Assembly: GCA_900088475.1 (NCBI GenBank)
Contig: FLMG01000131.1
Span: forward strand, 1-57,158
DNA length: 57,158 bases
From: Hyphochytrium catenoides
Lineage: Eukaryota; Protista; Hyphochytriomycota
Reading direction: 5' to 3'
The notes beneath the pieces are model-generated. The model worked only from the letters and a program-made list of their open reading frames with translations. It did not search any database and had not been told where the DNA came from. Each line of letters starts with the position of its first letter. Position 1 is the first letter of the stretch. The position numbers and the translations under genes are program-made. Positions 1,161 through 40,615 of this stretch are shown piece after piece.

Positions 1161-3239
1161 TGTTCTGTCCACCTTCAAGCAACAGAAGGAAAGATGGCTA
1201 ATAAGTGAGATAAGATTGGGGAGGCTCTTCTGGTTGTCACTCTTTAGTCAGTGCCAAGAATGTTGTTAGTATGATATACATCAAGTTGGCCAACCCCCCA
1301 ACAAACAAATCATTTAGATGAAAGGGAAGCAGCAACTTAGGTGTCTAAAGGACCATAGGACATTGAGAACTAAGAAAAACAGAGAGGGAGAGGCAGGAAG
1401 AAGATAGAAGAATGAGAGCAGAGGGAAGAGATGAGACAGAGGAGGAAGAGCGAGACTCGGAGGGAGAAGAAAGGGAAGGGGGAGAGAAAGAGAGAGGTAG
1501 ATAGTAGTGGGGGAGAGAGAAGAGAAGAAAGAGACACACTAACCCCAATTTATCACGACAACCCTTCCTCCTTGTCATGCAAGCCTCTGCTAGCAAGAAG
1601 GTCAAAATATATCATCATAACGACTGCATCCAAGCACGTGGGTTGTTGGGCTGAAGCATTTTTTTGAGATTAGCAGCTAACTGCTATTCCTGGATTGCAC
1701 CTGCACTTCCAAACACAACGGCGAGGGATCGCAATTCAATAGCCCTGGTTGTTGGCAACCTTGAGTACGGCGGGCGTCCATCATGCATGTATGGTAATGA
1801 CGAAAGTCAGCTATGGTCGCCGATTGGCACGCTGGAAGTAGAGCGACTGCAGCTCGAGGCAAGAGCCTCGGCGTGGCGAGGAGCAGCAGCAGCAAACGCC
1901 CGCAGCGGGTCTTGGAGTTGGGGCCCCAGCAACCCCTACAATGGAGGAAAGAGGATGTGGTGGGGGAAGAGTGAGAAAAGTGGCAGGAGCTATAAGGGAG
2001 GATCAACCTTGGGAGAGCGCCGAGGGCCGTGAACTGTATTACGGTTATGGGCACTAAAGCCCTCCTGCTAGTCCTGCAAGGTGGAATGCTTGCGTCTTAT
2101 GCACTTCCCCATCCTATGTTATCATGCCTCTTTTGGTGAGGTCCCTCCTCTCCTTTCGGATGGATAGTCTCATTAGCTCATTACCTATAACGACACAGTG
2201 GCCTCAATGCAGCACCTCCTAGTAACGGGAGAGCAGTCCTCATAGCGGCAGCATCCACTGGCGGCACCTTCCTACCTATCTACCTCCATGCACTGCCACA
2301 ACGACGTCTATCATCTCCTCTCGTCCGCCGCGGGGTCACGACGGCGGCACACAGCAACAATAATGAGGTACGTAAAGAAGGCATATCCCGCAGCTTGGCA
2401 GAAGGAACAGAAAAAGTCGTCGGTGTCCATCTCTCATCACCACTTTCTTTCGTCATTGGATGAGGAACAGAGCAATTATGATCATCTTCTTCAGTTCGAG
2501 TCTTTCTCAAATGATGATACCGCAGCAGCTTCTCCTATGATACTGCCAGCAGCAGCGGCAACAAGCAACCATCGCATCTTCACGTCTGCACCTGACAAAC
2601 AGCACTTATTAGCCCACAGTGAGCAGCAGCCAGTCAGCACACCAAGATGAAGACACTGCTGACCCGTAATAGTGCTTATCCTTGGTGCTCGCGCTGCTGA
2701 TTGCCGCCGGCGCGCGACGCTGCTGAGAGGGCAAGAGAAGGACAGAGACGGAGGACAGTGGTCCACTTTTCTGTACCGCAACATACAGGCGCAGCTTCAA
2801 CCAGCCCTCCGTCCATATTCCGCATCTGGTGCTCCCTGGCTTAGGTTATTCTCGATACCATTTTTCTAAGTTGCGGCTTCAGACCAGTGTATAGTTGCAC
2901 TAAAGATTCATTCGTTTCTTCAGCCAGGCAGAAATACTCATAGATTCAAACTTGTTTGGTTGGGCCAAACGAAGCTTTCAAAAATGGAAACAAAGGACGA
3001 AGGTTTCAGAAGCAGGTGGGCTGACAGAAGCGTCTTTGTAACGCCACGCTTGGATTCTGATTCCCACCCATCCCACAACTTAATTAACTCATGGCGTAGT
3101 ACAGGTAGAGGGTGGGTGGGAGATGGATCGTGTCATGGTCTTTGGCACTTTTCTCATTTGCCCTTTCAAACGTATCCTTGTTCTTATCTCTAGCCAGGCC
3201 GTCCCTGTTGTTTCCTTCGACCTTGGACCTCTCTGTCTC

Positions 3240-3462
3240 TCACCAACCTCTCCTCCTCTCTTTTCTTTCTCTCACTCTTCAGATCTTCCTCTTCCTTTTC
3301 TTTCTCTCTCTTTTTCTCTCTGTCTTTCTCTCTCTCTCTGCGCGCTCTCCTCCCTCTGTCTCTCTTGACCCCTTATGACTCTATCTGTCTCTCTTCTTTC
3401 TCTGTCCTGTACGAACCAAAACACAATGGTAGGCAGCTTCTCTCTCTCCTCTCTCTCTCTCT

Positions 3463-3506
<44 letters not shown>

Positions 3507-3528
3507 TCTCTCTCTCTTTCTCTCTTTC
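3240..3528 (+). repeat. (CT)n-rich microsatellite region upstream of the CBS gene
   Basis: Long interrupted CT dinucleotide runs. Confidence 0.9.
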
Positions 3529-3764
3529 ATAAACAGAACTCTGTCTCGACAGGACATCATCTTGAGCCTGCTCTTTGCGCCCTGTGTACTTCTCCTTCGA
3601 ACTTTCCCAATATATCTCCTGCTCACGCTCATTCCTAAACTTGACATCCAAGAAGAACAACAGAGATCGCAGATATCTGAAGACTGAGATCTGCAGAAGA
3701 AAGAATCTCAAGCAAAACGACATTGAGAACCGTAGAACAATCAAAAGCTAAGACGCTAACCAAG

Positions 3765-5021
3765 ATGGCCGCACATAACCCTGATGATAGGCAAAAGCTT
3801 GACCAGGAGATCTACAACTTTCTCCAGAGCCACAGCGTTGACAGCTTTCTCATCCCTCAAGAAAAGCTTCTGATAGCGCCGTCCCAATGGACTGTGGACA
3901 GAGCCATGAAGGAGATGCTGAAGCGGAACATTAGCAGCGTTCCGGTCTACGAGCAAGACTATGAGATCGTCCCGCCTCTTGACTGGGAGGACGTCCCTGT
4001 CCAAGCCACATTGGGCCCACGCTACTGGTTGGGCTTCGTAGACTGCTTGGATCTGGCGGCCATGGCCCTCCAGACAGACATAACAAAGAAGGAGGAGTCG
4101 CTGTTAGCCAAGCTCTCGAGCTGGATTTCGCTCACTCCAAGGTACTACATAGGCTCTCAATAGTACTGACTTCATGAAGTGGACAGTTGCTGATGATGCT
4201 CTCCGTCTGCCCACAGCTCCAAGGAGGTTGGCCGAGTGATCAATCTCTCAAATGCAGACCCTTTCTATGGCATCAGACTGGGCAACTCCCTGTTGAGGGT
4301 GATGGAGGCCATGTCCAGGGGTGTCCATCGTGTGGCTATCGTCAGCCCGGACCCTGAATACAAGGACGTCCTACAGGTGGTGGGCGTCATCACTCAGTCG
4401 CAGCTGGTCAAGCTCCTTGCAGACAATCTATATGCATTAGGAGACCTACCCGGCTATACGATAGAGGAGCTCTTCGCAGACAAGCTGCAGACAAAGCCAA
4501 AGGTGCTGACTGCCTCAACAAAGGTTTCGGCGCGGCAAGTGCTGGAGCTGATGGTGACCAACAAACTTTCAGCCATTCCGCTGGTGGATGAGAATGAGGC
4601 TATTGTCACGAGCATGAGCGCCTCAGACATCAGGGCACTTTGCAAGCTGCCTAAAGACCAGTGGACAATCTTGGACTCCCCGGCTTTGGAGTTTATCAAC
4701 GAGATCAGGAAGATCTTGCTGCAAGAGATCCCAGATTCTTTCATGGGATCCAGACAGATTGACAGAGCTATCACTGTCAACCCTCGGGACACGGTGGGGA
4801 CAGTGCTGAACCTCATCGCGGCCTCCAGATTGCATCGTGTGTACGTCGTGGACAATAGACGACGTGTCATTGCAGTGATCTCGCTTACGGATGTGGTGGC
4901 GGCCTTGCGGCCTAAGGGAGTGGTGACGGCCTCACCTAAGCCAAAACATAAGACACTGGCGCCACAAGATGTCCAGAAGGCAGCTGAAGCACCAGTGGAT
5001 GAAGGCAAGAAGACTCAGTAA
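3765..5021 (+). CDS. CBS-domain (Bateman module) protein, SDS23/AMPK-gamma-like; 2 exons (intron 4142-4216)
   Basis: ATG at 3765 (MAAHNPDD...). A GT-AG intron joins ORF 3723-4163 to ORF 4236-5021 in frame (CCA AG|C TCC). Four CBS-like signatures: NISSVPVY..GFVDCLDL, GVHRVAIV..VGVITQSQLV, KLSAIPLVD..SMSASDIR, RLHRVYVVD..IAVISLTDVV. Ends TAA. Confidence 0.88.
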
Positions 5022-5372: not shown

Positions 5373-8300
5373 TTAAAAGCCCGGAGTAGACATACGACCG
5401 ATGCCTTCGAACCGCCGGTCACCGTCTCTACTGGGAGGATGGTAGGATAGGGATGACCTTCTACCATCACCATAGCCGTGGTCCCCTCTTGTTCCCCTGG
5501 GACCTCCATAGTACTCTGGTTCATCATCTTGGAATGACCCGCCCCGAGCCCTGGTCTGAGTAGGTGCTGCTGCCTGGTATGGCGCAGGAGCGGCCCCACC
5601 ACCTTGATAGGCTGGTGCCAAGCCGCCTGCATTTCTAATACGCTCATTGTTGGTGCGGATCGTGTTCTTTAGCCTGTTGACCCAGCCAATCATCTCTTCC
5701 CTCGTCTCCGCTGCAAGAACCAGCTTCCGCTCTTCGGAGTTGACAGCGAATCTCCATTCTGAAGATCCACTCGTCCCAGTCTTCATCTGATCAGCAGGAA
5801 GAACCTCGATGGCGTTCTCATCGAGGTTTTCAAAGTAGACCTCGCCTAAGAATGACTGTCCGGCCGCTTGCTCTTGATTCTCATAGTATCTTAGGGCGTT
5901 CTGATAGACAATGAAGTACCGGCGCTTCCAGTTCTGTCGGTGTGCTCCTTTCTTCCATCTGGAGCAAAGCAGAGCCATATTAGACATCGGCAGCAGCCAT
6001 TAAAAAGTTGCAACGAGAAGAGCTAAGCAAGGACAGTGACTTGGATAGCAAGTAGATCACCCCGAAGACGGCATAATAGCTCAAAGCTAAGGAAGAGGAA
6101 CAACAATGAAGCGCCAGCACAGCCTCCAACAGGAACTGACTCATCCTGGTAAAAGAGAGAAGGAGGAACAAAACAACGTATACTTAAGGACTAAAGAGCA
6201 ATTGCACGTACAGCCAGCCCTGGCTTGGTCCAAGCATTTGCGGTTGTATCTCTACTTGGGCCACCGCTGATCCCCTCGCACGCTCCCTTGCCAATCGAGA
6301 CGCTGTGCATGTCGCTCTTAGAGCTGCTTCCCACTGCATAAAGGCCAATGTTCGCAAAAGGAGCAGCAGGAAGGATGAGATGAGTCTACTAGCAAGCCAT
6401 CTCATAGAATCGAGACAAGAAGAGGAGAGGACGAGATGACGTTTCCCTTAAAAGACACATAGAAACTACGCCCAGCTACCTCTTGCAGGTCTTCGTTGGA
6501 GACAGCCGTGACGTAGAGAGAGCGCTCCTTTGTGGTCAACTCGAGGATGCGGAAAAATCCTGGGACGCGGCCCAACTTGAGAGATTGAGGAGGCAGAACC
6601 TTTACCGAGCGTTCATCCACCCAGCTGAGGTTAACCTAAGAACACTGTCTTAGCATAACGTACATTCAGTTGGCTAGTTTCGCTTTCTTTGGTCTCCTTC
6701 TCTCTCGCTCTCGCTCTCTCTCTTTCTCTCTCTCCTATATTCCTCGATGCCCGGTCCTGTCTTTTGATCATCCAGTTTTGCTCCGTTTGCGTGGAGGAGG
6801 GCCGTACCTCGCCCTTCTGCTTCCCTCCGGGTCTATCGAAGTACTTGAGGTAGGTAGGATAGAGTGTGAAGTGCCTCTCTTTCCAATTTTTGTTCAACGC
6901 CCCTCGCTTCCAGATCATTCCCTCCTAGTGATGCAAGCAAATGGTGTTGAGTTAGCAGACCTTGAACAAAAATTCAGCAGAAAAGAGATATATCCTATGC
7001 CGAAGAAAGAGAGACACCATTCAAGGAAGCAGCAAAGGGCAAGTAAGGGACAAAGGTAGGTCAGAAAGATAGGTTAATCTGTAAGGTAGAGTCTCACAAA
7101 CAAGTGAGAGGTGGAGGACCGATTAGCCGGCCTAAAGACAGCGAAAGAAGAAAGAGATGTCCTGAGTTGGCTACCTTAATCAACCCGTGCGGCTGGCTGA
7201 GGATAGTGTCTATATTATATGGCGTGAAGGGCTGCTGTGCTTGTTGTTGAGGAAGTGATGGTGCCCGTGCTGTCTTTGAAGGACTAGTCTCCCTTGGGGA
7301 GTCTCCTAGTCTTGCTCGTGCTTCATCTTCCATATAAGGAACTCCTGCGGTGTCACACTTCCCGCCTGCTGGAGTCCTATAAGCTCTCCCTCCAGGACGA
7401 GGCTCCGCCTCTGCCCAGTCTCTTTCCCTTCCAGAACTTCCGCTGCTGAGCAAAGAGGTCACACTGACAATGCCACTAGCTCGCCCTGATAGCTCTGAGG
7501 ATGGGGATCGCCCTACAGTTTCCCGTGAAGGAGAGAAATCGCCGTAGACATTGCCCGTTAAACTTTGCCGTTGGTATGGAGCCGAACTTAGCTTCTCTCC
7601 ACGGGTAGAAGAGGATGGGCTCATATCTTTGTGAGAGGGCGAACGGCTGTCGTAGTACCTTCCTTCAGGGCTCTGACGTCGATGAGGAGCGGAGCTTGCT
7701 CTTTCTGCATAAGTAGGAGGTACCACATGCAGTGGAGGACTAGGTGCAGCCCTCTCTCTCTTCTGCTTTGAACGCGCTATGGCGCGACTCGGCTCACCCT
7801 CACAAACGTATCGGAAGTAAAGTAGCCACTAGGGGCCGAACAGGACCAAGGGCAAAAAGAGAGGTAGAGGGAATGACGCATGGCGGTGAGGACCTGAGTC
7901 TCAGAGAGCGTAACGTGTGATACTTACGTCTTGCATTTCTTCTTGACTATCTGCCGCCAAGTACAGCTGCCGTTTGTTTCTAGTTGAGGAGATGCTGAAT
8001 AGGAATCCTGTTGGTTCTAAGGGAGCCAGACCGAGCGCCGATAGAGCGTCCCATATAAAAGACAAGTTGATCAGCTTTCCAAAGACATAAGGAGGATCAG
8101 AGCAGATATCTTGAAAACGGAGACGGAAAAGGTAGCCCAAGAGAGAGGCTGTCGATAACGCTAGGATATGATAAGGTGCTTCTCATAAATGGAGAGACCC
8201 TCGGCGAGGCAGCTAACGCAAACTTCAAGCAAGAGGAGTACCTTCTTCAATAGCATCTCCCGGGTTCTCCCTCAGTAGGTTGCAAGAATAGGCATCATCA

Positions 8301-10200: not shown

Positions 10201-10749
10201 CAGGAAGAGACAGAGAATAGAAGCGGCAACAGACAGATGACTGTGTCTAGGCTATTGTGGGCAAATTTCCCTAATGATTCTTGATCTGAAACTATCGATA
10301 GCACTACATATTAGCACCAGGCAGGAATCTTTCAAAGTTAACACCTCAGAAACCTTCAGGGCGGTTCTGATGGGGGAAAGGGACAAGATCTACAGGAAAT
10401 GACAGGAGTTAGGGTTAGGCTGGGGCGCTTCTCTTGCTGCTGTCTCCTCCTCCTCTGCTCCCTCTCTTCACTGTCTCCCTCCATAGAAACATGCCCGAAA
10501 TCCCGAATGTTGAAGCTCGTGATGGTGGTAGATTGGTATCTACCATTGTTGGAGAACTCTAAACTGGTTTAGTCTGAGTATCTGTGGGTGTGCGGAACTA
10601 TTTACACCACCAGTAGTTCCCACTGAGGAAAAAGACAAGACGCTTTAGGTCAAGAGAGGGGGTGGGGCCCCCCAGCATTCCTTACTGTAGTGCTATGACA
10701 GCCGTTTCGGCCTTCACTTGCAATGAAGGAAATGTAACCTTTCGAGCTT

Positions 10750-11113
10750 CTTTCTCTCTCTCTCTCTCTCCCTCTGTCTCTCTCTCTCTGCCTCTCTCTC
10801 TCTGTCTGTCTCTCTCCCTGTCTCTCTCTCTCTCCCTGTCTCTCTCTCTCTCTGTCTCTCTGTCTCTCTCTCTCTCTGTCTGTCTCTCTCCCTGTCTCTC
10901 TCTCCCTGTCTCTCTCTCTGTCTCTCTGTCTCTCGCTCTCTCCTTTCCTCTTTATTTTTCCTCTGTCGCTACTCGTCTCTCTCTTCTTTCTCTCTCTCTC
11001 TCTCTGTCTGTCTCTCTCCCTGTCTCTCTCTCTGTCTCTCTGTCTCTCGCTCTCTCTTTTCCTCTTAATCTTCTCCTCTGTCGCTAGTTGTCTCTCTCTT
11101 CTTTCTCTCTCTC
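10750..11113 (+). repeat. (CT)n/(CTGT)n compound microsatellite containing a direct duplication of about 114 bp
   Basis: ctcgctctctc..ttcctct..a.t.t.cctctgtcgcta..gtctctctcttctttc occurs twice with offset 114 (G at 10935 and 11049). Confidence 0.85.
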
Positions 11114-11791
11114 TCCTATGAGTACTTGCTTTATCCTTGTGTCTCTCTCTTCCTGACTCTTTTGTCATTGTCCTCTTCCTCCTCTCTAATTTTCTGTCTC
11201 TCTTCGTGTCTCCCTCTCTCTCCCCTCCGCTTTCCCTCTGTTCCATTCTTCTTCTCTCTTTATCCTCTTTTCCCATGGCTCTATCACTCTCTTTCTGCTT
11301 GGTTTTGCCAAACATTATTGATGCTGCTACTGAATCCTTCCCTCCTCTCTCTCAGCCTCAAGTCTCTTGTTGTTGACTGCTTGGTGTCTTCCTCCTTCTC
11401 CCTCACTTTCCGCGCCGGTCGGAGCTCCTGTCTGATGACACCCTGGATGACACTCTTAAGGCAGAAGAAGGACAGAGCATCAGACAGACAGAGGGACTGA
11501 GAGAGGAGAGAGCGTCTTCTCCGTTTTGTCCAGCAGAGAATCAATCTCTCTTTCCCGTGCCACTCTTTCCTGTTATCGGCAAAGGTGCTCGCTTTTTCTT
11601 TGNNNNNNNNNNNNNNNNNNNNNNNNNNNNNNNNNNNNNNNNNNNNNNNNNNNNNNNNNNNNNNNNNNNNNNNNNNNNNNNNNNNNNATGAACGCCCAAG
11701 CAGCTTCTCATCATCACCGCAACCCACCAGCTCCAACTTGTTAGACAAGTTACCTTGTTGAGGAACAGGGTACCACGGTTGCTGATAAGCG

Positions 11792-14700
11792 ATGAATATC
11801 CTAAGAGCAACAGACTGTTTGTCCTCCGGAGGACGACGACACTGGCTTGCCATCGTGCTGGTTGTTCTGACTCTAAGCTTGGGCCTGCTTCTTCCTTTGT
11901 CAAGTGCCAGCTGCTGTCCTAATGATTGTTCAGGCCGAGGGCTTTGCCGACCGTCCAATCACTGTCAATGCGACTGCATCAAAGGCTTCACAGGACCTGA
12001 CTGCTCTATCCGTAAGTCCTTCTACCTTTTCTATAGAGAGCAGGGACCTTCTGTCGAACACTTTGTCTAAATTAATTGCTTCAGTGTCCTCTCTTCCTCA
12101 CGCTAGCCACTTCTTCTTTCTCTCTTTGTCCACCATGCCGACAGTGGGACTTCGAGACTGCTCATCTTTGAAGTTTGAACTATGCGTCTCCTCTCTCCTC
12201 CTCTCTCGCTTGCTCTTTCTCAGTGCTTTCCTTCTCTCTTTGGCCCCACTTACTTTCTCTCTCGTCGTGTCTCAATCATTCTCTTCAGTACATCCTCCTC
12301 GTCGTCGCTATATGTTGCCGTCTTTTCCTGATGTCTTCTTCACTTTTCTAGGCTCGTGCCCTAAAGGCGTAGCTTGGTCTGACTTTGCGTCGGCTGTCAA
12401 CAAGGCCCACCAGCGGTCTGAGTGCTCAAACCGAGGGACCTGTGACTCCTCCTCCGGGCTCTGTGTGTGTGACCCCGGCTTCACAGGGGCGGCCTGCGAA
12501 AGAAGTAGGAGAGAGAAACCTTTCTCTTCTCTATCTTCACGCCTACTATATATTCTGTTTTCCGCGCTTTTTGCTCCATATCANNNNNNNNNNNNNNNNN
12601 NNNNNNNNNNNNNNNTTTTCTCCTCTCTCTCTCTCTCTCTTCTCTATTTTCTCTTTTCTCTGTCCTCCTCTTCTGATCTTTGCATTTACCTCTCTCCCTT
12701 CCCCACCTCTTCATTTCTGATGGGGCTTGACAATCTCGCAGATGTGTGTCCAAACAGCAATTGTGGGGGCCATGGCCGATGTATGACCTTAAGAGACTTT
12801 GCTTCTCGCGGCGCTCTCTCCTACGGTCTGCCGTCTCCTGTCTCTTACAGTGTCAACTGGGATGCTGAGAAGATTCAGGGCTGTTTCTGCGACGAGGGAT
12901 ACTCCGGTCCAGGCTGCGAGCTAAGTGAGTCGACCTGCTTCTGTCATCCTGGCACCACACTGCTGCCAGTTGCCGGATTCTATGGCTTCCCTTCTAAGCC
13001 TCTCCGAGGCTTCTAACACCACGTCTGCCGTCAACCAACTTCCCTAGAGGCTTTTGGCGGCTAATACTTCTCTGCTTCTCCTACTGCTCTCACTGGTCTT
13101 CAGATTTGTTTGAGGCTATCCTTGCCTCTCTCCTCCCTTAATTACTCTTCCCTCTCACTCTCTCTTTTTCAATCTGTCTCTCTACCCGCATAAAACTTTC
13201 TCCTTCTCCGGCCGTGTTTTCAACTCATTTTAACGGAATGGTGTACTTCTATCCTGGACGATAGGGAGCTGCCCTGCAGGTGATGATCCATTGACTGGAA
13301 CGGTGGAGGATCCCCAAGGCTTGCAAGTGGATGAGATCCAGCAGATCACGTGTACAGCCACGGTAGGTCTATTAGGCGAAGGGAAAGAGAAGAAGAGAGA
13401 AAGACGCTGGCTCTGTTGTTCATTGCTTTCTTTGTGCTCTCTCTCTCGTCTCTCACTGGCTTGCTCTTTGTTGTCTCCTTGTTATCCTCCTAATAATAGG
13501 GGGGAACCTTCACGTTAAGTTTCAAAGGAGAGACAACTCCGCGGCTTCCTTGGGACTCTTCGGCGGCGATGGTGCAGGAAGCTCTGAGAGGATTGCGGAC
13601 GATGGGAAAGGTGGCGGTTGAGTTTGCTTCTTCTTCCCTCTCCGCCTGTTCTCTCACAGGGACGAGGATTGTTATCCTGTTTCTGACCGAACATGGAGAG
13701 TAAGAATCACCAAGCATCAACCCCCTTCTTTCCTTCACAATTATCTTCAAGCATCACCCCTCCTGCACGGCACCTTGAGCTGCTCTTCTCCTCTCACTAC
13801 TCTTCTTTTATCTTTGCTCTCTCTCCCTTTACCTCTCTCCTGTCCTTTGCCTCTGCTTTGCCTGCCTTCTCTAGCCATGGATTCCTGGTTCCTCTACTAG
13901 CTGCGCGTGGAGATAATAGTCTCTATAGTATTCTTGCCTAACCTGTTCTCTCCTTTCGCCTTCTTCAGGTTGCCTCTTATACTTGGGGACGACTCTGCAC
14001 TTGTCTCCTCGTCTCTCTCCGTACCTCCTGGGCTGTCCGTCCATAGGATTCAGAAAGGGACAAAAGAGAGTGTTCCCTGTGCAGGCAGAGGAACATGCGA
14101 CAGTTCTATTGTATGGACTATCTGTCTCTTTCCTTCTCATCCTTTTTGTCACTCAGGACTGATCTTCTCCTGCACTCTACGAGCCATATTGCCTTCACTT
14201 GTTACCTCTTGCAGCCAACTAGATGTTGTTGTTGCTGGTTTCCTCTCACCACCTCTCTTTCCCTTCCTTTGACCGGTCAATTGGCTCTGCTGTTAGGGTG
14301 ATTGCCAGTGCTTCGAAGGCTATTCAAGCAGTGACGGCGCAGGGAGGCCAGGAGTTAGGGGAGAATGCGGCTTCAGGAAAGAGCAAGAAGTTAGATGTCC
14401 GGTAGGAACAAGGCCATTGCTTTCCTTCCTACGACGCACGTGGTCACGACTTGATACTTGGCTTGTTCTCTTTGGATCTCCATCTCGTCTCTCTTTCGCT
14501 GTCACACCTACGTAGAACTCTTCCCCTAGCCGTCGTCGCCTAAGTTATGATTTCTGTTTGCCCGCGTTCCTTGTAAACGTATCCCTGCTTACTTCGTGTT
14601 CTCCTATGGGTTCTCAATGACCTGATGTGGCTGTCACGGCACTCTTCCACTACGATGCTGGCAGGGTCCTTCCCAAAGCCTCTGCAGTGGACACGGTGCC

Positions 14701-16017
14701 TGTAGCGGGCCTCCAACCTTCCGCTGCCTCTGCCACCAGGGCTGGACAGGAGGAGACTGTGGACAACGTAGGGCCAAGCAAGACATTATCGGCTGCCTCT
14801 CTACTTTTTTCTCTTTCTTATAGATAGAGATATACAAGCCTAACCATTGAAGTCATGATAACGTAGACTAAACACTCGCTTTCCGCAGGCATCTGTCCTA
14901 GTGGGAAGTCTTTCTTCTCCTTCCCTTCGACTTCGACCTCTGCGCACCCGTTGGCAGAGTGTTCCTCGGCTGGAGTCTGCGATCGCAGCACGGGAGAGTG
15001 CACGTGCTATCCCGGATATGAAGGAGCAGCTTGCGAGCGATGTAGGAGTTTGGCTCCTTTGCTTCTTCCCTCCTCTTCTGGCTTTAACTTACTCTCTCTA
15101 TCTATACCTCTTTTTCCTGTCTTTCTGTCTGCTCCTCTCTCTTTCCCCTCTAGGGATCCTTATCTCCTTTTTCTGTCTTCTACCAGGACAGACAGCAGCT
15201 TCCTGCTTCTACCATAACTTTGCCGCTTAAAGCACGCCCTCGCTTTTAATTTCCTCTCGCCGATCCTTGGCTGCTAATCGTGGCGGTTCGGCAAACTGTT
15301 CTTTTGCTAAACTACCTCTAGGTTTCTCTGCACATCTCTCATTTCTCTTTCTCTCTCTCCCCCTGTCTATCTCTCCTCTCCTGCTTATTCTTTCACTGTC
15401 CTCTTTCCGTTCTCCCTCATCTCTCTGCGGTCGAGCAGTGGCTTGTCCCGGCGGCTCCCAAGAAATAGCGTGCAGTGGCCATGGGCGTTGTCTTTCTATG
15501 CGCAAACTGGCACCTCTTGGTCGGACACCCATCACGAAAGATCTGACGGGTCTGGCCTATGGAGAGGGCGATCCTAAGAATCTGAATGTAGGGGTTTCTC
15601 TCTCTCTGTCTCACTCACTCTCTCTGAAATATCCACATCCAGATGTCTTACCTTGTTTCCCTCAATACGTTCTCCAGTCCCAGTCGTTGTTTCATCCTCT
15701 CTCTATCTCTTTGATCCTTGGCTCACTTTCTCACTCTCTCTTCCGCACCTCTCAGATATGGGATGCAGACTCCATTCAAGGATGTCTTTGTGACCAGGGT
15801 TATGAGGGCCACGACTGCGCAAAGAGTATGACGACACATCTATCTCCTTTAACGGTCAATATTCTTCTAATTGTATGGACTCCTGGCATCGTGTCTCTCT
15901 CTTCCTTCTGGCTGTTCTATGCGCTACCATCAGAGTCCTGTCCCACCGGTGACGATATCTTAAAGCCCTTGGCCAGTGATAACAGTGTAAAAGTACCCAC
16001 CACGCAGGTGAGAAGTC

Positions 16018-17534: not shown

Positions 17535-20500
17535 TTAAGCCTTCTACAGAGAAACATATAAACACTTCGTTTAGCTTCTAGGACGCGCGTGTGATATCTC
17601 TTACCTTAACTGGACTTCCGTTCTCTTCTTCCTCCTTAATCGGGCCTTCTAGCTGCTTTGCCGCTCTCTTCTTTCCTCTGGAAGGGAGAGGGGCGTTTTC
17701 CTTGTCGGACAAGGTGTGATGGCAAGAAGGAACAGGAACAGCAACCCTCCTGCCACTCCGGAGGCTAAGAGTGGAAATGGAGGAAGCGTCCGAGTCGCTC
17801 TGCTGGCACAAGTCCGCTGTGTCTTTTGTCTGAGAACGTGTGCGACGAGAGATCTTCTTACATTCGTTGTGGTCCTCGCCTTTCTCTCCGTCTTCTGGGT
17901 GCTGCTTATCCTGGCCCTTTATTTTGGACGCCTTCTTCCGCGTTCTTGGCTTCTCCTGCTGCTCTCTGTTTTCCGGCTTTGGGGCTTTCTTTGCTCTCTT
18001 CTCGACTAGAGGTCCCTCTTCTTCGTGGGTGGATATGAGTTCCTCCTCGGTGTTCTGGATGGAGTTCTTCCGTGTGCGTCTGGTTCGTAGTTTCTTTGGC
18101 TTAGCCGTTGTATTTTCTTCCTCCTCTTGGTTCTTGTCCACGCTATGAGACGATGCTCCACGTCGCCTTCTCCTCTTTTCAGGAGCCTCGTGGCTCTCCT
18201 CGTTCCCAACGGAGGCCTTGTCCTTAAAAGATAACTGTCCTTCCTCGTCTTTTACTGTGGAAGCAAGAGGAAGGGGCAATGAGCCAGGGATAAAAAAAGG
18301 CTGAGTATGAAGAGTAAGGGGACTGTGTACCATTGAGTCAGAGGCAGTTATTAATGTGGAAAGAGAAAGAGTGGGAACAGGGAGTTATGGAAGGCCATCA
18401 TAGCGAGACTACCTTTCTTTTGCCTCTTTCTTTGGCGAGACTTGTCTTTTTCACTGTCGCCCGTATCCTCGACCTGCTCTCTTTCCTTATCCTCATCTTT
18501 CTTTAACTCTTCTGTGGTCTCTCTATTACTCTCCGGGTTGCACTCTTCCAACATCGCCTCTCTAAGAGCAAGAGAATCTTGAAGATAGGCATCCAGTACG
18601 AAGCCGTAGGCAATATCTAAAGAGAACAAGAGGTTTAAGCTTGGGTTGGGGCGGAAACAGTGGGAGCAGGACGACCATCACCGGCTGCCTTCTTTATGTC
18701 GTTTGTGAACTTCTCACCTTGGTCAATGTCAGCAAGGACTGACAGTTTATCTGCAAATTTCCGTACCTCTGCTTCCTCAATAGTATCCTTAAACAGAGAG
18801 TCTAATGCCATCTCGTCCTCCACTAATCCTGCATCTCTTTCCTTGACAGCGGCACTACGATAATGACGGACGGTGGGTGAGATGAAGATGGCAGCTGAGA
18901 AGCGTCCGGCTGCTTAGGGGAGTAAGCTCAGGATGCTCTTACATTTGACCTTCTTCACTTCCATCGGCGGCTCGTTTAGAGTCCAATGCTGACTCCGTTG
19001 CAACAAAAGGCAGACTGACAACAACTTCATCTTCTCCCGTTGGCTCCTCCGATACGTGCGCTTTTTGTTCAACTTCTGCTTCAGGAACTCTTTTGAACTC
19101 CAGTGACTGGCGACGGAAGGCTTCTGGATCAACCAGATACGCAGATAGTGCTGTATCATAGGCTTCTTCCTCTGGGCGAGATAGAACGAATTTAGAGACA
19201 AGCACTGGAGCAGTGGGGAGTCAAAGGAGAAAGAGGTCACTTATAGACAGAATAGACACAGCGACAGACTCCATAGTGTGTGAGATGGCCCTACCAAGAC
19301 AGGATAAGGAAGAAGGAGACTGCCAACCTGTTTGCACTTGACCGTGCAGAGTGAGCTCCTGAGCTTGTTCTTCAATGAGCTTCTGGTCCTTTAAGACCAG
19401 CATCTTTCGCGTCTCCTGAGCGCTCTCTTGGTCTAGGGACATTAGGGGTTGAGGAGTGAGGTCACTGAGAAACCCAAAGACAGTCTCACCTGCTGCAGCC
19501 TCATCTTGTCGTAGCACCTCAGGTTCCTGCTGGTAGGCTTCCACCACGACCCTATATGACACAGCTGTTGCAGGAAGGCTATTAGGGCTCGTCTCGGACA
19601 AGGCAGCCGGGCATCATGGAAATTGCTTACGAGGGGATAACAAAGGGGCCAAAGGGAGAGAGCTAGAGGGATCATTGGAAAGAGAACCTCTTACATAAGT
19701 CGGCCTCTGTCTCAGCGCTCAGTCGCCTAGCAGCCTGTAAAACCACCTCTTGATCTGCTCTGCACTTCGTTATACACTCCGCCAACGGCGAGACCATCGC
19801 TGCGTAATGGCTCCCGTGCTCCTCTCGTCTTCTCTTTCTCGTACTGACCGCCTCCTTTATCGCTCTCGTCATGGGGCTTTCCATCGTCCTCAAAGTCTTG
19901 ACGTTTCCCAAAGAGGAACTCTGAATGTCTCTTTTGAGTGGAGAGGACAGCTTACGCAGTTGGGAATAGTGAAGGGGACGGCTGTCTACCGCCTGCTCCA
20001 CCTCCTTCTTCAAAGGAGAGGAGATTCGAGGAAGCATAGAGAAGTGTGGTTGACGGCCAGCTACGGTATCTCTTATCTCTTCCCTTACGGGAGAAGAAAC
20101 TCTTGACAAAGAGGAAAAATGTGGAGGACGGCTGTTGACAGCTTCCTCAAGCTCTCTTTTTATGGGTGAGGAGATCCTCTGGCACTGTGAAAAGTGTTGA
20201 GAACGATTGGCGGCAGTCATTGCGAGTTCCCTCTTCAAAGGAGATTCAAGCTGAGGAAGAGCGGAATGATGTGGCTTGCGGTTGCGAGCTACCTCTTTCA
20301 GGTCTCTCTGGAGCGGAGAAGAGAGATGTGGAAAGGAGACTATACGTGGTGGACGCGCGCTGGCTGCCGCTCCAAGTTCGTTCTTAAGAGGAGAAGGTAG
20401 GTGAGGAAGAGCAGAAAAGTGTGGAGGCCTGGTATGGGCGGCTGTGTGGAGCTCTTTTCTCAAGGGGCTAGGCAACCCAGGGACGGAGGAGATGTGTTGA

Positions 20501-23500
20501 GATCGTGAAGCGGTCGCGTCTCTGACTCTCCTAAGAAGTTCCTCCTTATACTCCGCGCACCATCGCATGGCGGAGGCCTGAGGGCGCTGGAACCTCTCTG
20601 CAGCAGCTCTGACAAGTTCTTCCCTTTGCCGCTGAGGAAGACGAGACATCTGCGAAAAGTGCGGCTTGGCATTCATGACATTGGCGGTATCCTTCAGCTC
20701 CTTGGTAAGCGGAGAGGAAAGTGTTGCAAGCTCTCTGAGAGGCGGTGGTCGATTGTCGGCTATGTCAGCTGCTTTGCTCTTCAGCTCCTGCTTTAGAGCT
20801 TCAGGTACAGAACCCATTCCCGCGTGCAGAGCTCGTCTCTCTGCTCTATCTAGAGCATCTTGCTGCAAATCTTTCCTCAGTGGGCTTGGCAGAGTCGGCA
20901 CCTCAGTAAGTAGTGGAGGGCGGCTGCTCTCTCTCTCTTTTCCTCGTAGTACTAGTTCGTGTCTAAGGGGAGAAAGTATGGTAGGAACTTCGCTGGCCAA
21001 GGGCACTCGAGATTCTTCTCTTTCTTTTGTCTTTCCCTTCAATTCCCGTTTTATTGGTGTCGGCAAAGCTGGCAGCTCATCATGTTGAAGCGGTCGCCTG
21101 CTCTCTCGTTCTGTTGCCTTGCTTTTTACCTCGGTCCTCACAGGAGAAGGGATAACTGGAACCTGGCTGTAGTGCAAAGGACGGGTCTCGGCTGAAGCTT
21201 TCTGGTACAACTCCGTTTTGAGGGAGGCGGACATTAAAGGAGGATCAGCCGAAGAGCTAACCCTGCGTGCTTTGGCTTTGTTTTCCAATTCTTTCTTGAT
21301 AGGGGAAGGAATGGTCAGCAACTCGTCTCTGAGAGGAGGACGGCTGGCCCCTCTGTCTCGTCCTTCTTTCTGCAGCTCCTCTTGCAACTCTTTTGGAAGA
21401 GAGGGAAGCTCCTTGTAGATGTCAGAGCGGCCAATTTCTGTCTCCCTGACTGCCTGCTTAAGCTCTTTCTTCATGGGAGTTGGCAATCTCGCACTTTCCG
21501 CATAGTGCACCGGTCTTCTCTGGTCCATCGCGGCGGCTGTCGCTACCAGTTCTTGTTTCTGCGGTGAACTCATCACAGGAGGGATGGGGATCCCAAACAG
21601 CGAAGAGTCGCTGCTGACTTCCGATCCAGTTGCTAGGCTGAATGATGATATAGGAAGCGAGGAAAGAATAGCAGTATCTGAATCTTGCTCCATTCTTCTT
21701 TCTCTCTTGTTGGCCTCTTGACAGAGTTCCTCTTTTAGTGCTGAGTCGAGAACTGGGCCCTCAGAATAGTGCTTCGGGTCCCTAGCCGCCGTTTGTTGGA
21801 GCTCGAGTCCTGGTCCTTCCGCCATCGAGCACGGGACGTCGCTGGGTCGATTGACTGTTCCTCCTGTGGAACCATGAATCTCCAGAAGCTCCTGCCGCGA
21901 TGGAGAAGAGAGAGAAGGCAGAACCGCCGAGGTCCCTGTCTCTGGGTTCTCCATGGCTCCGACTTCGTTCTCTTCTGGAAGAGGAGGAAGAACCATAGAG
22001 GGACTATCTTCTTTGTGAGCGCATTCGACTAATGTGGTCTCCTTTTCCCCAAGCAGTTCGTCCTGTTGCGCATGGTTCGGTACCAGGGCATTCTCTAGGC
22101 ACTGCTCTTCCGGTTTATTAACCGCCTGATTGATTGTTCCCACAATTCTCTCCTCGACGGACTGCTGCGTCTCTTGAATGATTTCCTGGGTTTCAGTTAC
22201 TTTCTCCTGCTGACGACAAACTTCTGGCGATTCCACACTGAGGTCGTCTAGAACAACCTTGGGGGTCTCTGCCTCTACAGACTCCTTTGACACATCAGGC
22301 ACAAGGAACGGAGAACTTGGTCCTGTTGCGCTCAAGGTTGGAATAGAAGGCAAGGAAGGCGAAGGAGAGAACCTCTCGCCAAGAATGCTGCCAGGATCCG
22401 AAGATTCATCTACCTTGTAGCGCTTTGCTGGACTCTCTTCCAGTGAGCACCCAGGTCGAGGGGACGATGATCCAAACGAAGAGGGAGACGAGAGTGCATT
22501 CTCCCTGTTCCTTTTCTCTGGAGTACCCATCGGAACGCCATTCTCCGACGCCGTGCTGTGCCGACCGTTTTGCCCCTCAGATATCTCTGTGGCCGAATAA
22601 GACTTCTCATGGAGAGCTTTCACAGGTGTTGACGCAGAGTTGATTGGGGCAGGGGCCACAGGCTGAGGAGATGGAGGAAGGGCGTTTTCTTTCTCAGACA
22701 GGAATTCATACTCCGATGGACTTTGGCTCTTTTCCTCAATTTGTGGAGAGGGGATAATCGTCTTGGAATGAGGAGCGCGGTCAGCCAGCGGTCTCCGCTG
22801 TAAGAGCGTCCTATTTCTCACTGCTGCAACCCAGTTGGTCCTCAGAGTGCTAGGAAGATCTGTCCTAGGGAAAGAACTTCTTGCGGGCATCGAGATGGTT
22901 CGGTCTTCAGCGTCGTCCGAGACCATTCCTGGGGTAGACATGGAGCGCTGCGTTGAAGATGTAGGTTCTATGTCCTTTGCGCAGTCATCTGCAGCCCAGG
23001 ATTCCTGGTGGAGAGGTTCTGGCAGCAAGAGTGGACGTGAGGGCCAAAGACATAAGATACCCGTGAAAGGAGAAAGGAGAGCAACGTTCAAGGGTCCAAG
23101 GGTATGAACTCGAGGCCAGAAAGCAAGAGTTGAAGGAGAATGTACTAGATAGGCAGAGCGCTACCAAGGGTAAGAGGTGGATCATGATTCGAGAGAGCCA
23201 AGATAAGCCAGAAGGAGCACACTTTGTGTCGTACCATACTCCCAGCGAAAGGAGCGATCTGCAATCTTGATTATGGCGCCATGAGGGACAGCAGTGGGTT
23301 TACGAAGTGCCTCATCGTTGAGCAGCGTAACATTACTCTGAGTAAGGGACTCCAGGATAACCTGGCCATCGATCACGTTAAGACTGGACGGGCTCTGTCG
23401 AGGACGGATACCACAAAAGGAGATAAACATAGAGGATAGAGATAGACTGTCTACCTTTCCCCTACGGCAGATCCGGACGCTGGCGTGTAGGCGTGAGACC

Positions 23501-23710
23501 TGCGGTAACTGGATGCGGATGTCGCAGGAGTCTTTTCTAGAAGGGGAAAAGAGAGTTAGCCGACGGCCCATTGCAGTGGGCAAGCAAGCAGTGTGATGTA
23601 GACCTGCCCAAAGTGATATCCTGGCACACTTGGAAACGGCCACCTTCCTTTCCGTCCCGCTTGATGACAATGATGGTTCCAAACGGAGCCACCTTAGACG
23701 GTCCTTCCAT
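17535..23710 (-). CDS. Large Ki-67-like protein: N-terminal FHA domain, tandem S/T-P repeat array, acidic blocks and basic C-terminal tail
   Basis: Exons 1-3 splice to MEGPSKVAPFGTIIVIKRDGKEGGRFQVCQDITLGR|KDSCDIRIQLPQVSRLHASVRICRRGK|VILESLTQSNVTLLNDEALRKPTAVPHGAIIKIADRSFRWEY, with the FHA GR, SxxH and N motifs. This is followed by the 1139-aa ORF 19672-23091 and downstream ORF-exons 19221-19601, 18939-19205, 18635-18823, 18351-18629 and 17578-18333. The last micro-exon is predicted as KA* (TAA at 17535-17537). Some internal junctions were not fully resolved. Confidence 0.8.
19760..21771 (-). repeat. Protein-level tandem repeat array (about 23 units of 25-29 aa) inside the Ki-67-like gene
   Basis: Consensus approx. 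H-[FY]-S-x(4)-[LIV]-[PS]-[ST]-P-[LIV]-[KR]-x-[ED]-[LIV]-x(3)-A..R-P-P, e.g. HFSALPHLPSPLKNELGAAASARPP and HFSMLPRISSPLKKEVEQAVDSRPL. The period is about 29 aa in the N-terminal part and 25 aa in the C-terminal part. Confidence 0.9.
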
Positions 23711-30203: not shown

Positions 30204-32935
30204 ATGAGCCATCCTCCTCGCTTCTTTTCTGTCATGGATTCACAAGAAGCGCACCCGCCCCGTAAGACCTTAGTTTCTTAAGAAGAACTCATAGCCTCTC
30301 TGTTGCTGCATTCAGGCCTCTTGTCTGTCTATCGTCGAGCAGAACCTCTAAGGAGCGTTGGTGCCCCTTTACCACTTGCCACTCTGTTATTGGGAGCAGC
30401 AGTAGGTGCAGGGTTTGCTTTCTCAAGCCATCACAGTGGCTGTGAAGAGCAAAAGGCCGCGTGTGACACTCAGGCGCATATAACTCAGCGATGGTACTAC
30501 TACAGAGGTAAGGCCCTCTGATCCTTTTAATGAGTGGCTTCCATTGTCATCCTTTCCACGCGCATTGCTGTCCTAGGGCTCTAGCTCTCTGCGATGCAAC
30601 TGTCTCCTGCTGTCTCCCGCCATTAGTACTATCATCTATCCTCATGTACTCTCAAATAGGTCCGTTATCCAAAGATCACTTGCAGATCTGCAATATCAAG
30701 ATCTTCGCTTGCCAAGAGCAGCCGATTGCATCAGATATTGCGCGATACCTCGGCGTCCCGCTGGGCGACCTGAAGGGTGGGACGACGCCCACCTCAATTC
30801 TTGCTCTGTCCGTCTTTTGACTCTTCTTTGCCTTTTGATCATTTCTTCATCCTCTTCTTCCCTCTCTAGCTCTTTTCCTCTACTCGTCTCTCTAGCTCAA
30901 TCTTTCTAGAGAATCCATAATACTTGTCCCGATTCATCAACCATTTTTGCGCTCCTCGCTTCATAAGTGTCTCTCTTCATCTGCGTCTCTCTTATCTGAA
31001 GCTTCCTCTCTGGTTTTATTGCTGATAAGCTATTGCAGAAGTTGATGAGTTACGACTAACGTCTTGTCCACAGTTGGCAGTTTTGCCGATGGCGAGACCA
31101 GCGTAGAGTTTAAAGAGAGCGTAAGAGGCGATGACGTGTACATTGTCTGCTCTACCACTTCACAAGATAGGTATGGCAAAGGCAAGAAGTCAATGGCAGT
31201 GCCCTTTCCTTCCTTCGCATGTGTGCTGGCAGTTGTTGTTGCTTATCATGGAGACTGGGCGTTGTCGCTGTGTTCCTGTGAGTTTAGTTGCTTACTCAAT
31301 GGTCGCAGGATTATGGAGCTTTTTCTTTCAGCTTCCGCAGCATCTCGTGGCTCAGCCAAACGAATAACTGCAATTATCCCTTTCTATGGTAAGTGATTTT
31401 GTTTGGTTAGGAGGTAAAAGGAGAAGAAGGGCCTAGAGAGGGCCTGTAAAAGCAGGATAGACCCATTTGAGCCTGCTACTCGACTTGAAGCATCCTCATG
31501 GGTAATCTGGTCGGAAGGTTACTCGAGACAAGACCGGATGGCAACTGAGGGAGAAACAGTGGCGGCAGCGGTAAGATAACTTCATCACCTTGCTCGACTT
31601 GTTCTGATAGACTTAGCCCTTCTGCCTTCGGCTGGTCAGGACATAGCGCGGATGCTGGAGGTTGTAGGGATTGATCGAGTCGTAACGATTGACCTCCATA
31701 CAGGGCAGACAGAGGTAGAATGCGTAGTTCCCTCCCCCCTGGCGCTTTACTAAGAATTTCTTCACACTGCTCCCACACAATCATTGTAGGGCTTTTTGTC
31801 ACCAAGAATGCCAGTAAGTGCTTCCTCCTCTCCAACGCTTGAACGTCTGGCTAATCAGTATTTGGACCCCTCTATCCTTTTCTCACTGAATCTATTGTCT
31901 ATCTTCTTCCTATCCACCGTGTCGTTGCCGGTTAGATGGATAACATTCAAGCAATGCCTCTGGGCGCAGCTTACCTCTCTGAATCTGATCTGGATTCGCC
32001 TGTCGTGGTAGCTGCCCAGGAAAATGAAGTGCACAGAGCCAAATCGTTCTTCAAAGCTTACCAACAGTTTAAGGGAAGGAAAGACGGTAAGCAATGAAGA
32101 AAGGAGAACATCATTCTCAATTATAGACTGTGAGGTGCCCGAGAGGGACTCTTCACAGAGTAAAGCCAGGAGGGGCGTCCTGTAGAAGGAAGATCATGGT
32201 GGTTAGGAGGCAATAGGTGGGACTTGCAAGATGACCCTAACGCGTGTCCTTTAAAACAGGCATCTCGTTAGCGATGTTAGTTCGAGCTAGAAAAGACCGA
32301 GGGACAGTGGAGCTAGTAGGAGATGTCGAAGGAAGAGACTGTATCATTGTGGACGACATCGTAGATACAGGAAGGACGCTCCTGTCAAGCTCTCGGCTGC
32401 TAAAGGAGAAGGGAGCGAAGAGCGTCTCCGCCTTCGTAGTTCATGGTCGTTTCTCTGCGGAGGTATGGAAAATGAAGCGGATCCATACCGCGAAGTATTC
32501 TATGTCTAGGTCGTTGGCAAAGTGCGAGCCCAGTCTCCCTCTCCTTCGCCGCTATCCCAGCTTCTCAATGGCCGCTAAGTCATCATTTGGATCGCGTTAT
32601 ATATACAGAGCGTGAGGCTTGTCGAGGAGAGTCCAGACTTAGACAGGCTGATAATTTTGGACACAATCCCACCCCCTCCAGCCTACGACCCCGAGGTAAG
32701 CAGAGAGTGGCTGTGACGGTTAGGACGAGTGGAGGCACTGTCAAGAGACAGTGGAGAGGGTAAAACACTTTTGTCCTCCTCTAAGATACTCCTCCCACAG
32801 CATAGCAAGATTGAGTACGTCTCAGTGGCGGCTCTATTAGCGGAGCTGATCAAGGTGATACACCTGAAGGGATCCATCACGGAGATTTTTAACCCAGAGA
32901 TTCACGGCACGATTGACCGTCCTAAGGGGCCATAA
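30204..32935 (+). CDS. Ribose-phosphate pyrophosphokinase (PRPP synthetase) family protein, divergent, with N-terminal extension; about 11 exons
   Basis: Motifs [34 protein letters not shown]|[52 protein letters not shown] and [11 protein letters not shown]. The start codon could be 30204 or the next in-frame ATG. Confidence 0.9.
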
Positions 32936-35418: not shown

Positions 35419-36615
35419 ATGGTGATGTGGACACTTATTACGGGTGCGAACCGTGGCATCGGATTTGAGCTCGCTCGGCAGCTCTTGCTGGTTGACAGGC
35501 CAGTGCTTATTGGGGGGCGAAGCGGAGATCTGATTGAGAAGGCTAAGAAGGAGTTGCTGCAGCTGACCAACAAGCAAGAAGAAAATGTTGCTACTTTTGA
35601 GCTGGATTTGATGGATGATGCAAGGTATCTGCTGCTGCGAGCAGCTATATCGTGTCTCTTTTAAGAATCCTCTCCCAGTGACTTGACATCATGAGACCCA
35701 CAATCAATCTGCAGCTCTTTCTCTTGTACGAGATGTCTTAGAGTCCGCTCCTTCTCTTATACGGAGTTCTTAGGTCTCGCTTCTCCTCTGGCTCTGCGTG
35801 AACCCCACTCCTTCAATCAGCATCACAAGCGCCATCGAGTATCTTAGCAAGCACTTTGATCAAAATATCACGGCGCTAGTCAACAACGCCGCCATTTTGC
35901 GGCAAGACACCTGGACCCGAGAAAATTTTGATGAGGTCTTGAAGACAAACTATCACGGAACCTTACGGTTCCTTAGAGGCGTTGCGCCGCTACTTCCACC
36001 CGAGTCCCGAGTTGTCAACATTTCTTCGCGCATGGGAGAGCTCTCTGGGCTACCTCAAGTCTATAGAGAAGCGATAGCGAATGCGAGCTTGGACGATCTA
36101 GAGAAGATTTCCTTTGATCCTAATCTCCGTAGCGCAGGCACTGTCTCGTACTCCGTTAGCAAGGCGATGATCAATAGAGCTACCCATCTGCTCGCAGAGG
36201 AGGAGCCTTTCAAGAAAAGGCACATCAAGCTTGTCGCTCAGACTCCTGGATGGGTACAGGCTCCTTTGCCCCTACATCTGGAACATATCGCTTCCATAGT
36301 ATCTTCTCTAACGTTCTTCCCGTAAAAGCTCACGAGACCTGTCGGCGCAGCATAGAGTGTCCTGCTGAGCGCACTTTCACTTCTTCACCGCGCTGCCAGA
36401 CATGATCTGTGTCCTCTGCGCTTGTTTGTTTCTGGAGAGTCTCCTTCTGATGATTTCCTCCTTTATTGTAGGTTCAGACAAGAATGGGCGGAAGCGGAGC
36501 CCCTAAGTCCATTGAGGACGGAGGACGAGCGCCTTTCCGCGCGGTGACATGTGACTTCGCGTCCCTGCCCAACGGCTGCTTTGTAGATGAAGAGGTTAAG
36601 CCGTTGGAGTTCTAA
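35419..36615 (+). CDS. Short-chain dehydrogenase/reductase, carbonyl reductase-like; 3 exons
   Basis: TGANRGIG (TGxxxGxG), LVNNAA, VVNISS, YSVSK (YxxxK) and PGW|VQTRMGG. TAA at 36613-36615. Confidence 0.92.

Positions 36616-38523: not shown

Positions 38524-40615
<2,092 letters not shown>

Follow-up and report, generated by a model that had tools for sequence, protein, structure and literature searches.

The window analysed here is the whole 57,158-nucleotide stretch of contig FLMG01000131.1 from the Hyphochytrium catenoides assembly GCA_900088475.1. On its minus strand, from 23710 to 17578, we modelled a ten-exon gene whose predicted product of 1,699 amino acids opens with a Ki-67-type FHA domain and continues as a very long disordered chain. 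Ki-67, which organises the surface of mitotic chromosomes, serves as the standard marker of proliferation. For a long time it was held to be vertebrate-specific, and its origin has therefore been hard to explain. An earlier note, made from the letters of this stretch alone, had proposed a Ki-67-like chromosome-periphery protein at 17535-23710, coordinates that agree with those of the gene. The features of the gene and of the rest of the window are collected in Table 1.

Table 1. Features of the gene for the Ki-67-like protein and other features of the window. Residue numbers refer to the predicted protein.
Feature	Position in window	Strand	Remarks
Whole predicted gene	17578..23710	-	10 exons, 9 introns, 1,699 codons + stop
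Exon 1	23710-23604	-	hand-built model
Exon 2	23536-23455	-	hand-built model
Exon 3	23361-23235	-	hand-built model
Intron 3	23019..23234	-	216 nucleotides, longest in model; joins FHA exons to large exon
Exon 4	23018-19695	-	hand-built model; large, 3.3 kb
Exon 5	19564-19490	-	hand-built model
Exon 6	19432-19328	-	hand-built model
Exon 7	19204-18943	-	hand-built model
Exon 8	18854-18718	-	hand-built model
Exon 9	18616-18413	-	hand-built model
Exon 10	18254-17578	-	hand-built model
Ki-67-type FHA, residues 10-105	23236..23683	-	over exons 1-3, split by introns 23603-23537 and 23454-23362
Acidic Ser/Pro-rich linker, residues 107-580	21595..23016	-	~475 residues; isoelectric point (pI) 4.6, net charge -34, 16 Ser/Thr-Pro sites
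KEN box 1, residues 215-217	22684..22692	-	context LSEKENALPPS
Tandem repeat array, residues 581-1165	19840..21594	-	pI 10.2, net charge +32, 17 Ser/Thr-Pro sites
RKRRR basic cluster, residues 1166-1170	19825..19839	-	candidate nuclear localisation signal, from its sequence
Acidic block, residues 1171-1475	18253..19824	-	net charge -29; end of exon 4 and small exons 5-9
Basic tail, residues 1476-1699	17581..18252	-	pI 9.5; KRRRRR and five R-[ST]-x(0,1)-R motifs (RRTR type)
KEN box 2, residues 1659-1661	17695..17703	-	context LSDKENAPLPS
CBS-pair open reading frame	4236-5021	+
Two PH-domain exons	5376-5999, 6634-6924	-	close together
Two open reading frames with EGF modules	11904-13016, 14867-15214	+	EGF_2, laminin-type and teneurin-type
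PRPP synthetase (ribose-phosphate pyrophosphokinase), two exons	31049-31393, 32241-32612	+	Pfam Pribosyltran_N, Pribosyltran, Pribosyl_synth
Short-chain dehydrogenase exon	35798-36325	+
Cys/Met pyridoxal-phosphate-enzyme exon	38667-39299	+
ARF_AD / BRWD-PHIP ancillary-domain match and WD40 open reading frame	51498-51842, 55388-56320	-	ancillary domain 53 bits, ~4 kb downstream of WD40 frame, same strand

The gene model was built by hand from a three-frame reading and the DNA. All nine introns, 57-216 nucleotides in size, have GT-AG borders, and the joined exons form a single open frame of 1,699 codons (~5,100 nucleotides) closed by a TAG stop; as predicted from the sequence, the ten-exon gene is intact. 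Exon 6 is the least certain part of the model, since both of its borders are in phase 1 and the frame is kept with or without it. The exon joins rest on prediction, and the FHA exons are connected to the repeat-bearing exon 4 by the longest intron of the model; on these grounds, and because this genome's own proteins are absent from protein collections, the two parts might be adjacent genes or the whole a decaying pseudogene, in which case the 1,699-residue protein would not exist. We consider such an artefact very unlikely, given that nine GT-AG introns keep one frame open over the full length and that the predicted splicing finds indirect support in related proteins. The spliced FHA aligns nearly gap-free to Ki-67 FHAs across both internal exon junctions. 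The junction of exons 3 and 4 reads WEY/EPLH, in agreement with FEYSPLH within one unbroken open reading frame (ORF) of the closest relative (P0003). In four relatives (P0026, L004, L005 and L006) the FHA is directly followed, in a single ORF, by 1,500-2,000 residues of disordered or low-complexity sequence.

A word-indexed protein search with the 1,139-residue ORF returned no match, the gene's own product included, so that this genome's proteins are apparently not in that collection. For H. catenoides, the species in which kalium channelrhodopsins were found (10.1101/2022.09.26.509509), the genome project placed no gene models in NCBI (PMC5795050); this would account for the absence of the protein from protein collections. 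The DNA runs that contain the window, two from a single sample of 2011 and one from 2017, fit the two GAIIx lanes and one HiSeq lane of that project, which is circumstantial evidence for H. catenoides as the probable host, a non-animal source being very likely. At the DNA level, the last 49 bases of a 151-base contig from a 2024 run on another organism are identical to 17711-17759 of the window; among four runs of unspecified kind compared with 17711-23710, this was the single matching piece, and no exon joint was seen. Soil and rhizosphere metagenomes contain ~5% of the sampled words of 17581-19581. These matches may stem from environmental presence of this organism or from words of low complexity.

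Pfam detects a generic FHA in exons 2 and 3 (19.8 and 17.8 bits). When the two exons were searched singly against all PDB sequences, the only matches were 2AFF and 1R21, both of them the Ki-67 FHA; exon 1 alone, in the correct frame, gave no match in the PDB, the exon being too short. A phmmer search with exons 2 and 3 and the intron between them read through yielded 27 matches among 1.84 billion cluster representatives, and no other FHA subfamily was found among the significant ones. The real matches are teleost proteins named 'proliferation marker protein Ki-67', a human Ki-67 FHA construct, turtle Ki-67, a sea-cucumber protein, a Joint Genome Institute (JGI) protein named 'antigen KI-67' and unnamed environmental proteins. 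All matches that carry a name from their source are called Ki-67, the sea-cucumber protein (P0013) excepted. Over ~98 residues, the identity of the spliced FHA (residues 10-109) to teleost Ki-67 is 44-47%; to the human construct it is 38%.

FHA domains were then compared with a profile made from an alignment of eight non-human Ki-67-type FHAs. The spliced FHA of the window protein scored 109.6 bits. Among PDB FHAs the same profile gave 122 bits for human Ki-67 and 38 for the runner-up, a bacterial GGDEF protein; CHFR (28.8), KIF13B (27.4), MDC1 (24.5), Rad53 (23.9), NIPP1 (18.7) and CEP170 (18.3) scored lower still. The six general FHA residues, which bind phosphothreonine, are all kept (G35, R36, S50, H53, N73 and N78), and the beta-4 strand CDIRIQLP, which according to the literature pairs with NIFK in the human complex, is present and identical to that of human Ki-67. 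Since FHA domains share a common fold along with these six residues, and since a tree of 19 Ki-67-type FHA rows is an unresolved star that gives no placement, one might suppose a generic FHA whose likeness to Ki-67 arose by chance or convergence. This explanation, which we regard as extremely improbable, is already contradicted by the gap of ~70 bits that separates the window protein from every non-Ki-67 FHA in the PDB, and by the lack of other FHA subfamilies among the significant phmmer matches. Judged by these sequence comparisons, the FHA belongs specifically to the Ki-67 subfamily. The earlier note had called it Ki-67-type rather than generic from the spliced N-terminus, which reads as given there, and had asked for a comparison with other FHA subfamilies; the profile agrees with that call (109.6 bits against at most 38 for non-Ki-67 PDB FHAs).

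The body after the FHA consists of ~1,590 residues of low-complexity sequence in which charge blocks alternate: an acidic linker, a basic repeat array, an acidic block and a basic tail. A Pfam scan found no domain in it, and a language-model atlas search with the large exon returned only other disordered proteins, all of them low-scoring. The whole protein holds 35 Ser/Thr-Pro sites, 19 of which conform to the full consensus of cyclin-dependent kinases (CDK), [ST]Px[KR]. The acidic block carries the motif A-Y-x-x-[DE]-x-x-[AV]-[LF]-R three times, once per exon. The KEN tripeptide occurs twice (0.25 expected, P 0.027), with near-identical flanks on both occasions, and we infer that these are candidate APC/C-Cdh1 degrons.

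In the repeat array the unit is 29 residues long in the first half and 25 in the second, with the core [LIV]-x-[ST]-P-[LIVM]-[KR]-x-[DE]-[LIV]. At least 16 clear units can be anchored on [ST]-P-[LIVM]-[KR]-x-[DE]-[LIV], spaced by 25 or 29 residues or multiples thereof, and decayed copies lie between them. Nearly every unit contains a full CDK consensus site. Tandem Repeats Finder reported only trivial microrepeats in the DNA of the gene and the array is invisible at this level, suggesting that the units are old and diverged and that the core alone has been kept. An AlphaFold model of the 25-residue units from a single sequence (mean predicted local distance difference test 50.6, predicted template-modelling score 0.19) showed short helices, each beginning at Ser-Pro; at this low confidence, the model fits a disordered chain with transient helices.

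The basic tail contains KKLRTRRTRK, RRTRSQ and LRSGRR in addition to KRRRRR. The motif R-[ST]-x(0,1)-R occurs five times in the last 300 residues (0.77 expected; not one of 1000 shuffles has as many) and is absent from the remainder of the protein. A like enrichment in the tail was found in L004, P0026 and one teleost protein (P0012), and a single RRTRK lies in the tails of three teleost Ki-67 proteins (P0017, P0022 and P0027) and of L005. Compared with the LR domain of Ki-67, the tail gave no homology at the level of alignment. The disordered body, the repeat array, the acidic blocks and the tail with its four basic motifs are thus all present on the minus strand, as the earlier note had described them.

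The CDIRIQLP peptide, used to scan metagenome contigs of JGI, matched at 31 loci. Three of them (L004, L005 and L006) are single ORFs of 1,564-1,971 residues with an FHA and a Pfam PP1_bind domain and are, by their sequence, canonical non-vertebrate Ki-67 proteins. The repeat core of the window protein recurs as [LIVM]-x-[ST]-P-[LIVM]-[KR]-[KR]-x-[LIV] in four metagenomic Ki-67-type proteins, the hydrophobic residue at -2 from the phospho-acceptor being likewise common to the cores of these relatives. In L004 it forms a 21-residue tandem unit with the core T-P-L-[KR]-K-[DE]-I. P0026 (the same as L002), a protein of 2,041 residues from a protist-like, intron-poor contig, has an array of the shared core, and PP1_bind was not found in it. 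L012 has units of 19-21 residues, and L033 has units of 21 residues together with a PP1 module recognised by eye (RSVCF...ELFDK...PPATPVKRG). Two of the four relatives, L004 and L033, therefore carry both the core and a PP1 module.

Counts of the motif support this likeness. The strict form [ST]P[LIVM][KRQ][KRQ]x[LIVM] occurs 10 times in the window protein and 11 times in P0026 (0.0 expected), and the looser form [ST]P[LIVM][KRQ]xx[LIVM] occurs 14 times in the window protein, 17 in P0026, 13 in L004 and five each in L012 and L033 (~0.2 expected). Nine teleost Ki-67 proteins hold 0-2 copies of the looser form. A hidden Markov model of the 16 window units gave 10.7 and 7.5 bits in L004 and 6.9 bits twice in P0026; the maximum over 100 shuffles of each protein was 0.2 and 4.3, respectively. 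We also tried shifted variants of the motif, [ST]P[LIVM][KRQ]x[LIVM] and [ST]P[LIVM]x[KR][LIVM], as a link to the vertebrate repeats, and rejected them: the teleost proteins have 0-2 copies against 0.1-0.4 expected, with no clear enrichment.

The likeness between the repeats spans just 10-16 residues and overlaps the CDK consensus, so common descent is likely rather than proven; from sequence, we consider it likely that the core was inherited in common with the other Ki-67-type proteins. The independent origin that the earlier note had assumed for the repeats is accordingly doubtful, given a core that recurs in four other proteins of this type, two of them with a PP1 module. We also entertain, tentatively and as a minority possibility, that the unit [LM]-x-[ST]-P-[LIVM]-[KR]-[KR]-x-[IL] is the ancestral Ki-67 repeat, which would predate the split of stramenopiles and opisthokonts and would have been replaced in vertebrates by the 122-residue K167R. 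If this were true, the 'unalignable' disordered body of Ki-67 would contain a functional module kept by conservation, such as a multisite phospho-switch assisted by Cks/cyclin or a ligand of the protein's own FHA, and a hyphochytrid would open access to a PP1-independent ancestral role of Ki-67.

Two of these relatives showed additional features. After their repeat arrays, P0026 (residues ~1309-1330) and the long ORF of L012, both without a PP1 module, share R-D-S-I-D-[ST]-I-F-x-G-L; no convincing counterpart was found in the window protein, where local alignments were not significant, and Smith-Waterman comparison of its acidic block with the C-terminal parts of both relatives gave z <= 2.2, not significant. 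In a word-indexed search, the FHA region of P0026 matched P0026 itself only. L033 (Ga0105054 contig, 1772-3900) is genomic, with short introns, a Ki-67-type FHA, the RSVCF-type PP1 module and 21-residue T-P-L-R repeats. This layout agrees with the published listing for the Monosiga homologue (RSVTF, 21 repeats of 21 residues; Haider et al. 2026, 10.64898/2026.06.18.733134), and judging from sequence its source may be a choanoflagellate-like organism.

Taken together, the sequence comparisons lead us to the reading, with a probability of about 0.7, that the product of this gene from a non-animal eukaryote, probably H. catenoides, a hyphochytrid stramenopile, truly belongs to the Ki-67-like family. 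The deep homologue envisaged at the outset stands for the FHA, which is of the Ki-67 subfamily; for the repeats and the tail, homology is plausible.

Several observations weigh against this reading. No pairwise or database search gave significant similarity outside the FHA. The PP1-docking module, a Ki-67 hallmark that the earlier note had listed, was not found in any of three ways: Pfam did not detect PP1_bind (PF15276), the RVxF-type motif [RK]x(0,1)[VI]{P}[FW] occurs nowhere in the 1,699-residue model, and a profile of the PP1 modules from 12 Ki-67 proteins gave zero match. Pfam gave no match to the 122-residue K167R repeat (PF08065) either; the invertebrate-type relatives L004-L006 also lack K167R, which marks it as a vertebrate-only hallmark. 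The whole protein has a pI of 6.36, a net charge of -14 and an Arg/Lys ratio of 1.24, and only the repeat array is strongly basic (+32). The candidate CDK sites are mostly Ser-Pro in the window protein and Thr-Pro in the relatives, convergence is possible because the motifs in common are short and coincide in part with the CDK consensus, and the joining of the exons is a predicted splicing. A stretch read by eye as a degenerate PP1 remnant (RSSF...DLPSTLR, residues ~152-166) was discarded, as the PP1 profile gives zero match there.

With no similarity detected outside the FHA, no PP1_bind, a near-neutral pI and an Arg/Lys ratio high for a Ki-67 homologue, the protein might share the FHA alone with Ki-67. 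It would then be a lineage-specific scaffold of the nucleolus or of ribosome biogenesis, with an FHA kept for a partner such as a NIFK/Nop15-like protein and with no role at the chromosome periphery or on chromatin, and its repeats and tail would owe their likeness to Ki-67 to convergence, towards CDK sites and towards basic motifs that bind nucleic acid; the motifs in common are short, and [ST]Px[KR] is the plain CDK consensus. The shared core exceeds that consensus, however, in a hydrophobic residue at -2, [LIVM] at +2, a basic pair at +3/+4 and [LIV] at +6, and five independent Ki-67-type proteins, two of them with a PP1 module, carry it in tandem arrays of similar period (19-29 residues). 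Moreover, RRTR-type motifs are confined to the C-terminal tail both here and in other family members. We therefore regard a likeness restricted to the FHA as unlikely and favour membership of the Ki-67-like family.

Non-animal relatives of Ki-67 were first described in a June 2026 preprint (Haider et al. 2026), so the restriction to vertebrates or chordates that the earlier note had repeated is out of date. The preprint defines Ki-67-like proteins by the same FHA signature and reports them across animals and in fungi, Capsaspora, Monosiga, Thecamonas, Dictyostelium and the stramenopile Hondaea; as it notes, InterPro has a separate Ki-67-like FHA entry with non-vertebrate proteins. According to the same source, the PP1 motif is missing in the Thecamonas, Dictyostelium and Malassezia homologues (Table 1 therein). 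Homologues mostly have a basic pI and a low Arg/Lys ratio, those of Hondaea, Dictyostelium, Daphnia and Aedes being acidic (Table 1 therein) and that of Drosophila having a pI of 4.5.

Like vertebrate Ki-67 (MKI67, human P46013; structures 1R21 and 2AFF), the window protein has an N-terminal FHA of the same subfamily with an identical CDIRIQLP, and its disordered body is likewise very long. Its tandem repeats are also rich in CDK sites, its basic tail has R-[ST]-x-R motifs, and it has candidate KEN degrons. It differs in the lack of an RVxF/KiR PP1 module and of the 122-residue K167R repeats, its units being 25-29 residues long, in its pI (6.4 against ~10 in vertebrates), in having more Arg than Lys, and in being about half as long. 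By their published descriptions, the homologues of Hondaea fermentalgiana (A0A2R5GIG2), Thecamonas trahens (A0A0L0D4Q8) and Dictyostelium (Q54WT0) share the Ki-67-type FHA and a long disordered Ser/Thr-Pro region. The Thecamonas protein, described with ~15 repeats of 25 residues and no PP1 motif (Table 1 of the preprint), has the same layout as the window protein. Hondaea is also a stramenopile, and its protein is listed in that table as acidic. The window protein is longer than these three (1,699 residues against 1,022-1,139) and has a well-defined basic tail by comparison with their descriptions, and it has a clear repeat array, whereas the repeats of the Hondaea protein are listed as 'no?'.

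Among the metagenomic relatives, P0026 and L012 resemble the window protein in a Ki-67-type FHA, in the absence of a detected PP1_bind and in arrays of [LM]-x-[ST]-P-[LMV]-[KR]-[KRQ]-x-[IL]; P0026 also has a near-neutral pI (7.1) and a C-terminal R-[ST]-x-R cluster. Their units are Thr-Pro, spaced irregularly or by 19-21 residues, whereas those of the window protein are mostly Ser-Pro, and the tail of P0026 has AT-hook-like RGRK repeats. L004 and L033, of animal or holozoan type, share the Ki-67-type FHA and T-P-L-[KR]-[KR]-x-I tandem repeats with the window protein, and L004 an RRTR-rich tail; they differ from it in a canonical PP1-binding domain (by Pfam in L004, RSVCF... in L033) and 21-residue units, and L004 in a pI of 10.1.

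The gene thus provides a complete and cleanly modelled example of a Ki-67-like protein, and with it a second stramenopile lineage joins the family. In this example the FHA travels together with the CDK-site repeats and the basic RRTR tail, and the PP1 module, the overall basic charge and the richness in lysine do not go with them. The repeat core shared with metagenomic relatives, some of them PP1-bearing, points to more sequence conservation in the disordered body than the preprint concluded (Haider et al. 2026). What is new here is the shared repeat core and the tail motif only, the family and its occurrence outside animals being already known, and the gene opens no new class of system.

By analogy with vertebrate Ki-67, the protein may have a perichromosomal or nucleolar role. 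The steps that such a role would involve are drawn from what is established for the vertebrate protein, reportedly in work by Cuylen et al. (2016) and Yamazaki et al. (2022). The basic tail would anchor the protein to chromatin or nucleic acid, and the FHA would bind a phosphothreonine-bearing partner, for instance a nucleolar protein of the NIFK/Nop15 type. Phosphorylation by mitotic CDK at ~17-19 sites could neutralise the +32 charge of the array or turn it negative, and this change could switch how the protein interacts or phase-separates, a behaviour that has been proposed for the repeats of Ki-67. After mitosis, the KEN boxes might lead to removal by APC/C-Cdh1. Recruitment of PP1 would not be part of this mechanism: the PP1-docking module of animal Ki-67 is missing, and recruitment probably lies outside the action of this protein.

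The window as a whole is a compact, intron-rich eukaryotic region. A run of N at about 49900-50050 is a scaffold gap, read as X in the frame 49827-50261, and an Rfam scan of the window gave no match. A word-indexed protein search with the WD40 ORF returned no match at E <= 1e-10; together with the ARF_AD/BRWD-PHIP match on the same strand, this frame may form one BRWD/PHIP-like gene. The two ORFs with EGF modules may be exons of one secreted or membrane protein. Long CT/GA-rich low-complexity tracts, whose frames read SLSLSL or ERERER, lie at 10600-11500 and 47200-48800, and strong excursions of AT- and GC-skew were seen at 10-16 kb and 46-50 kb.

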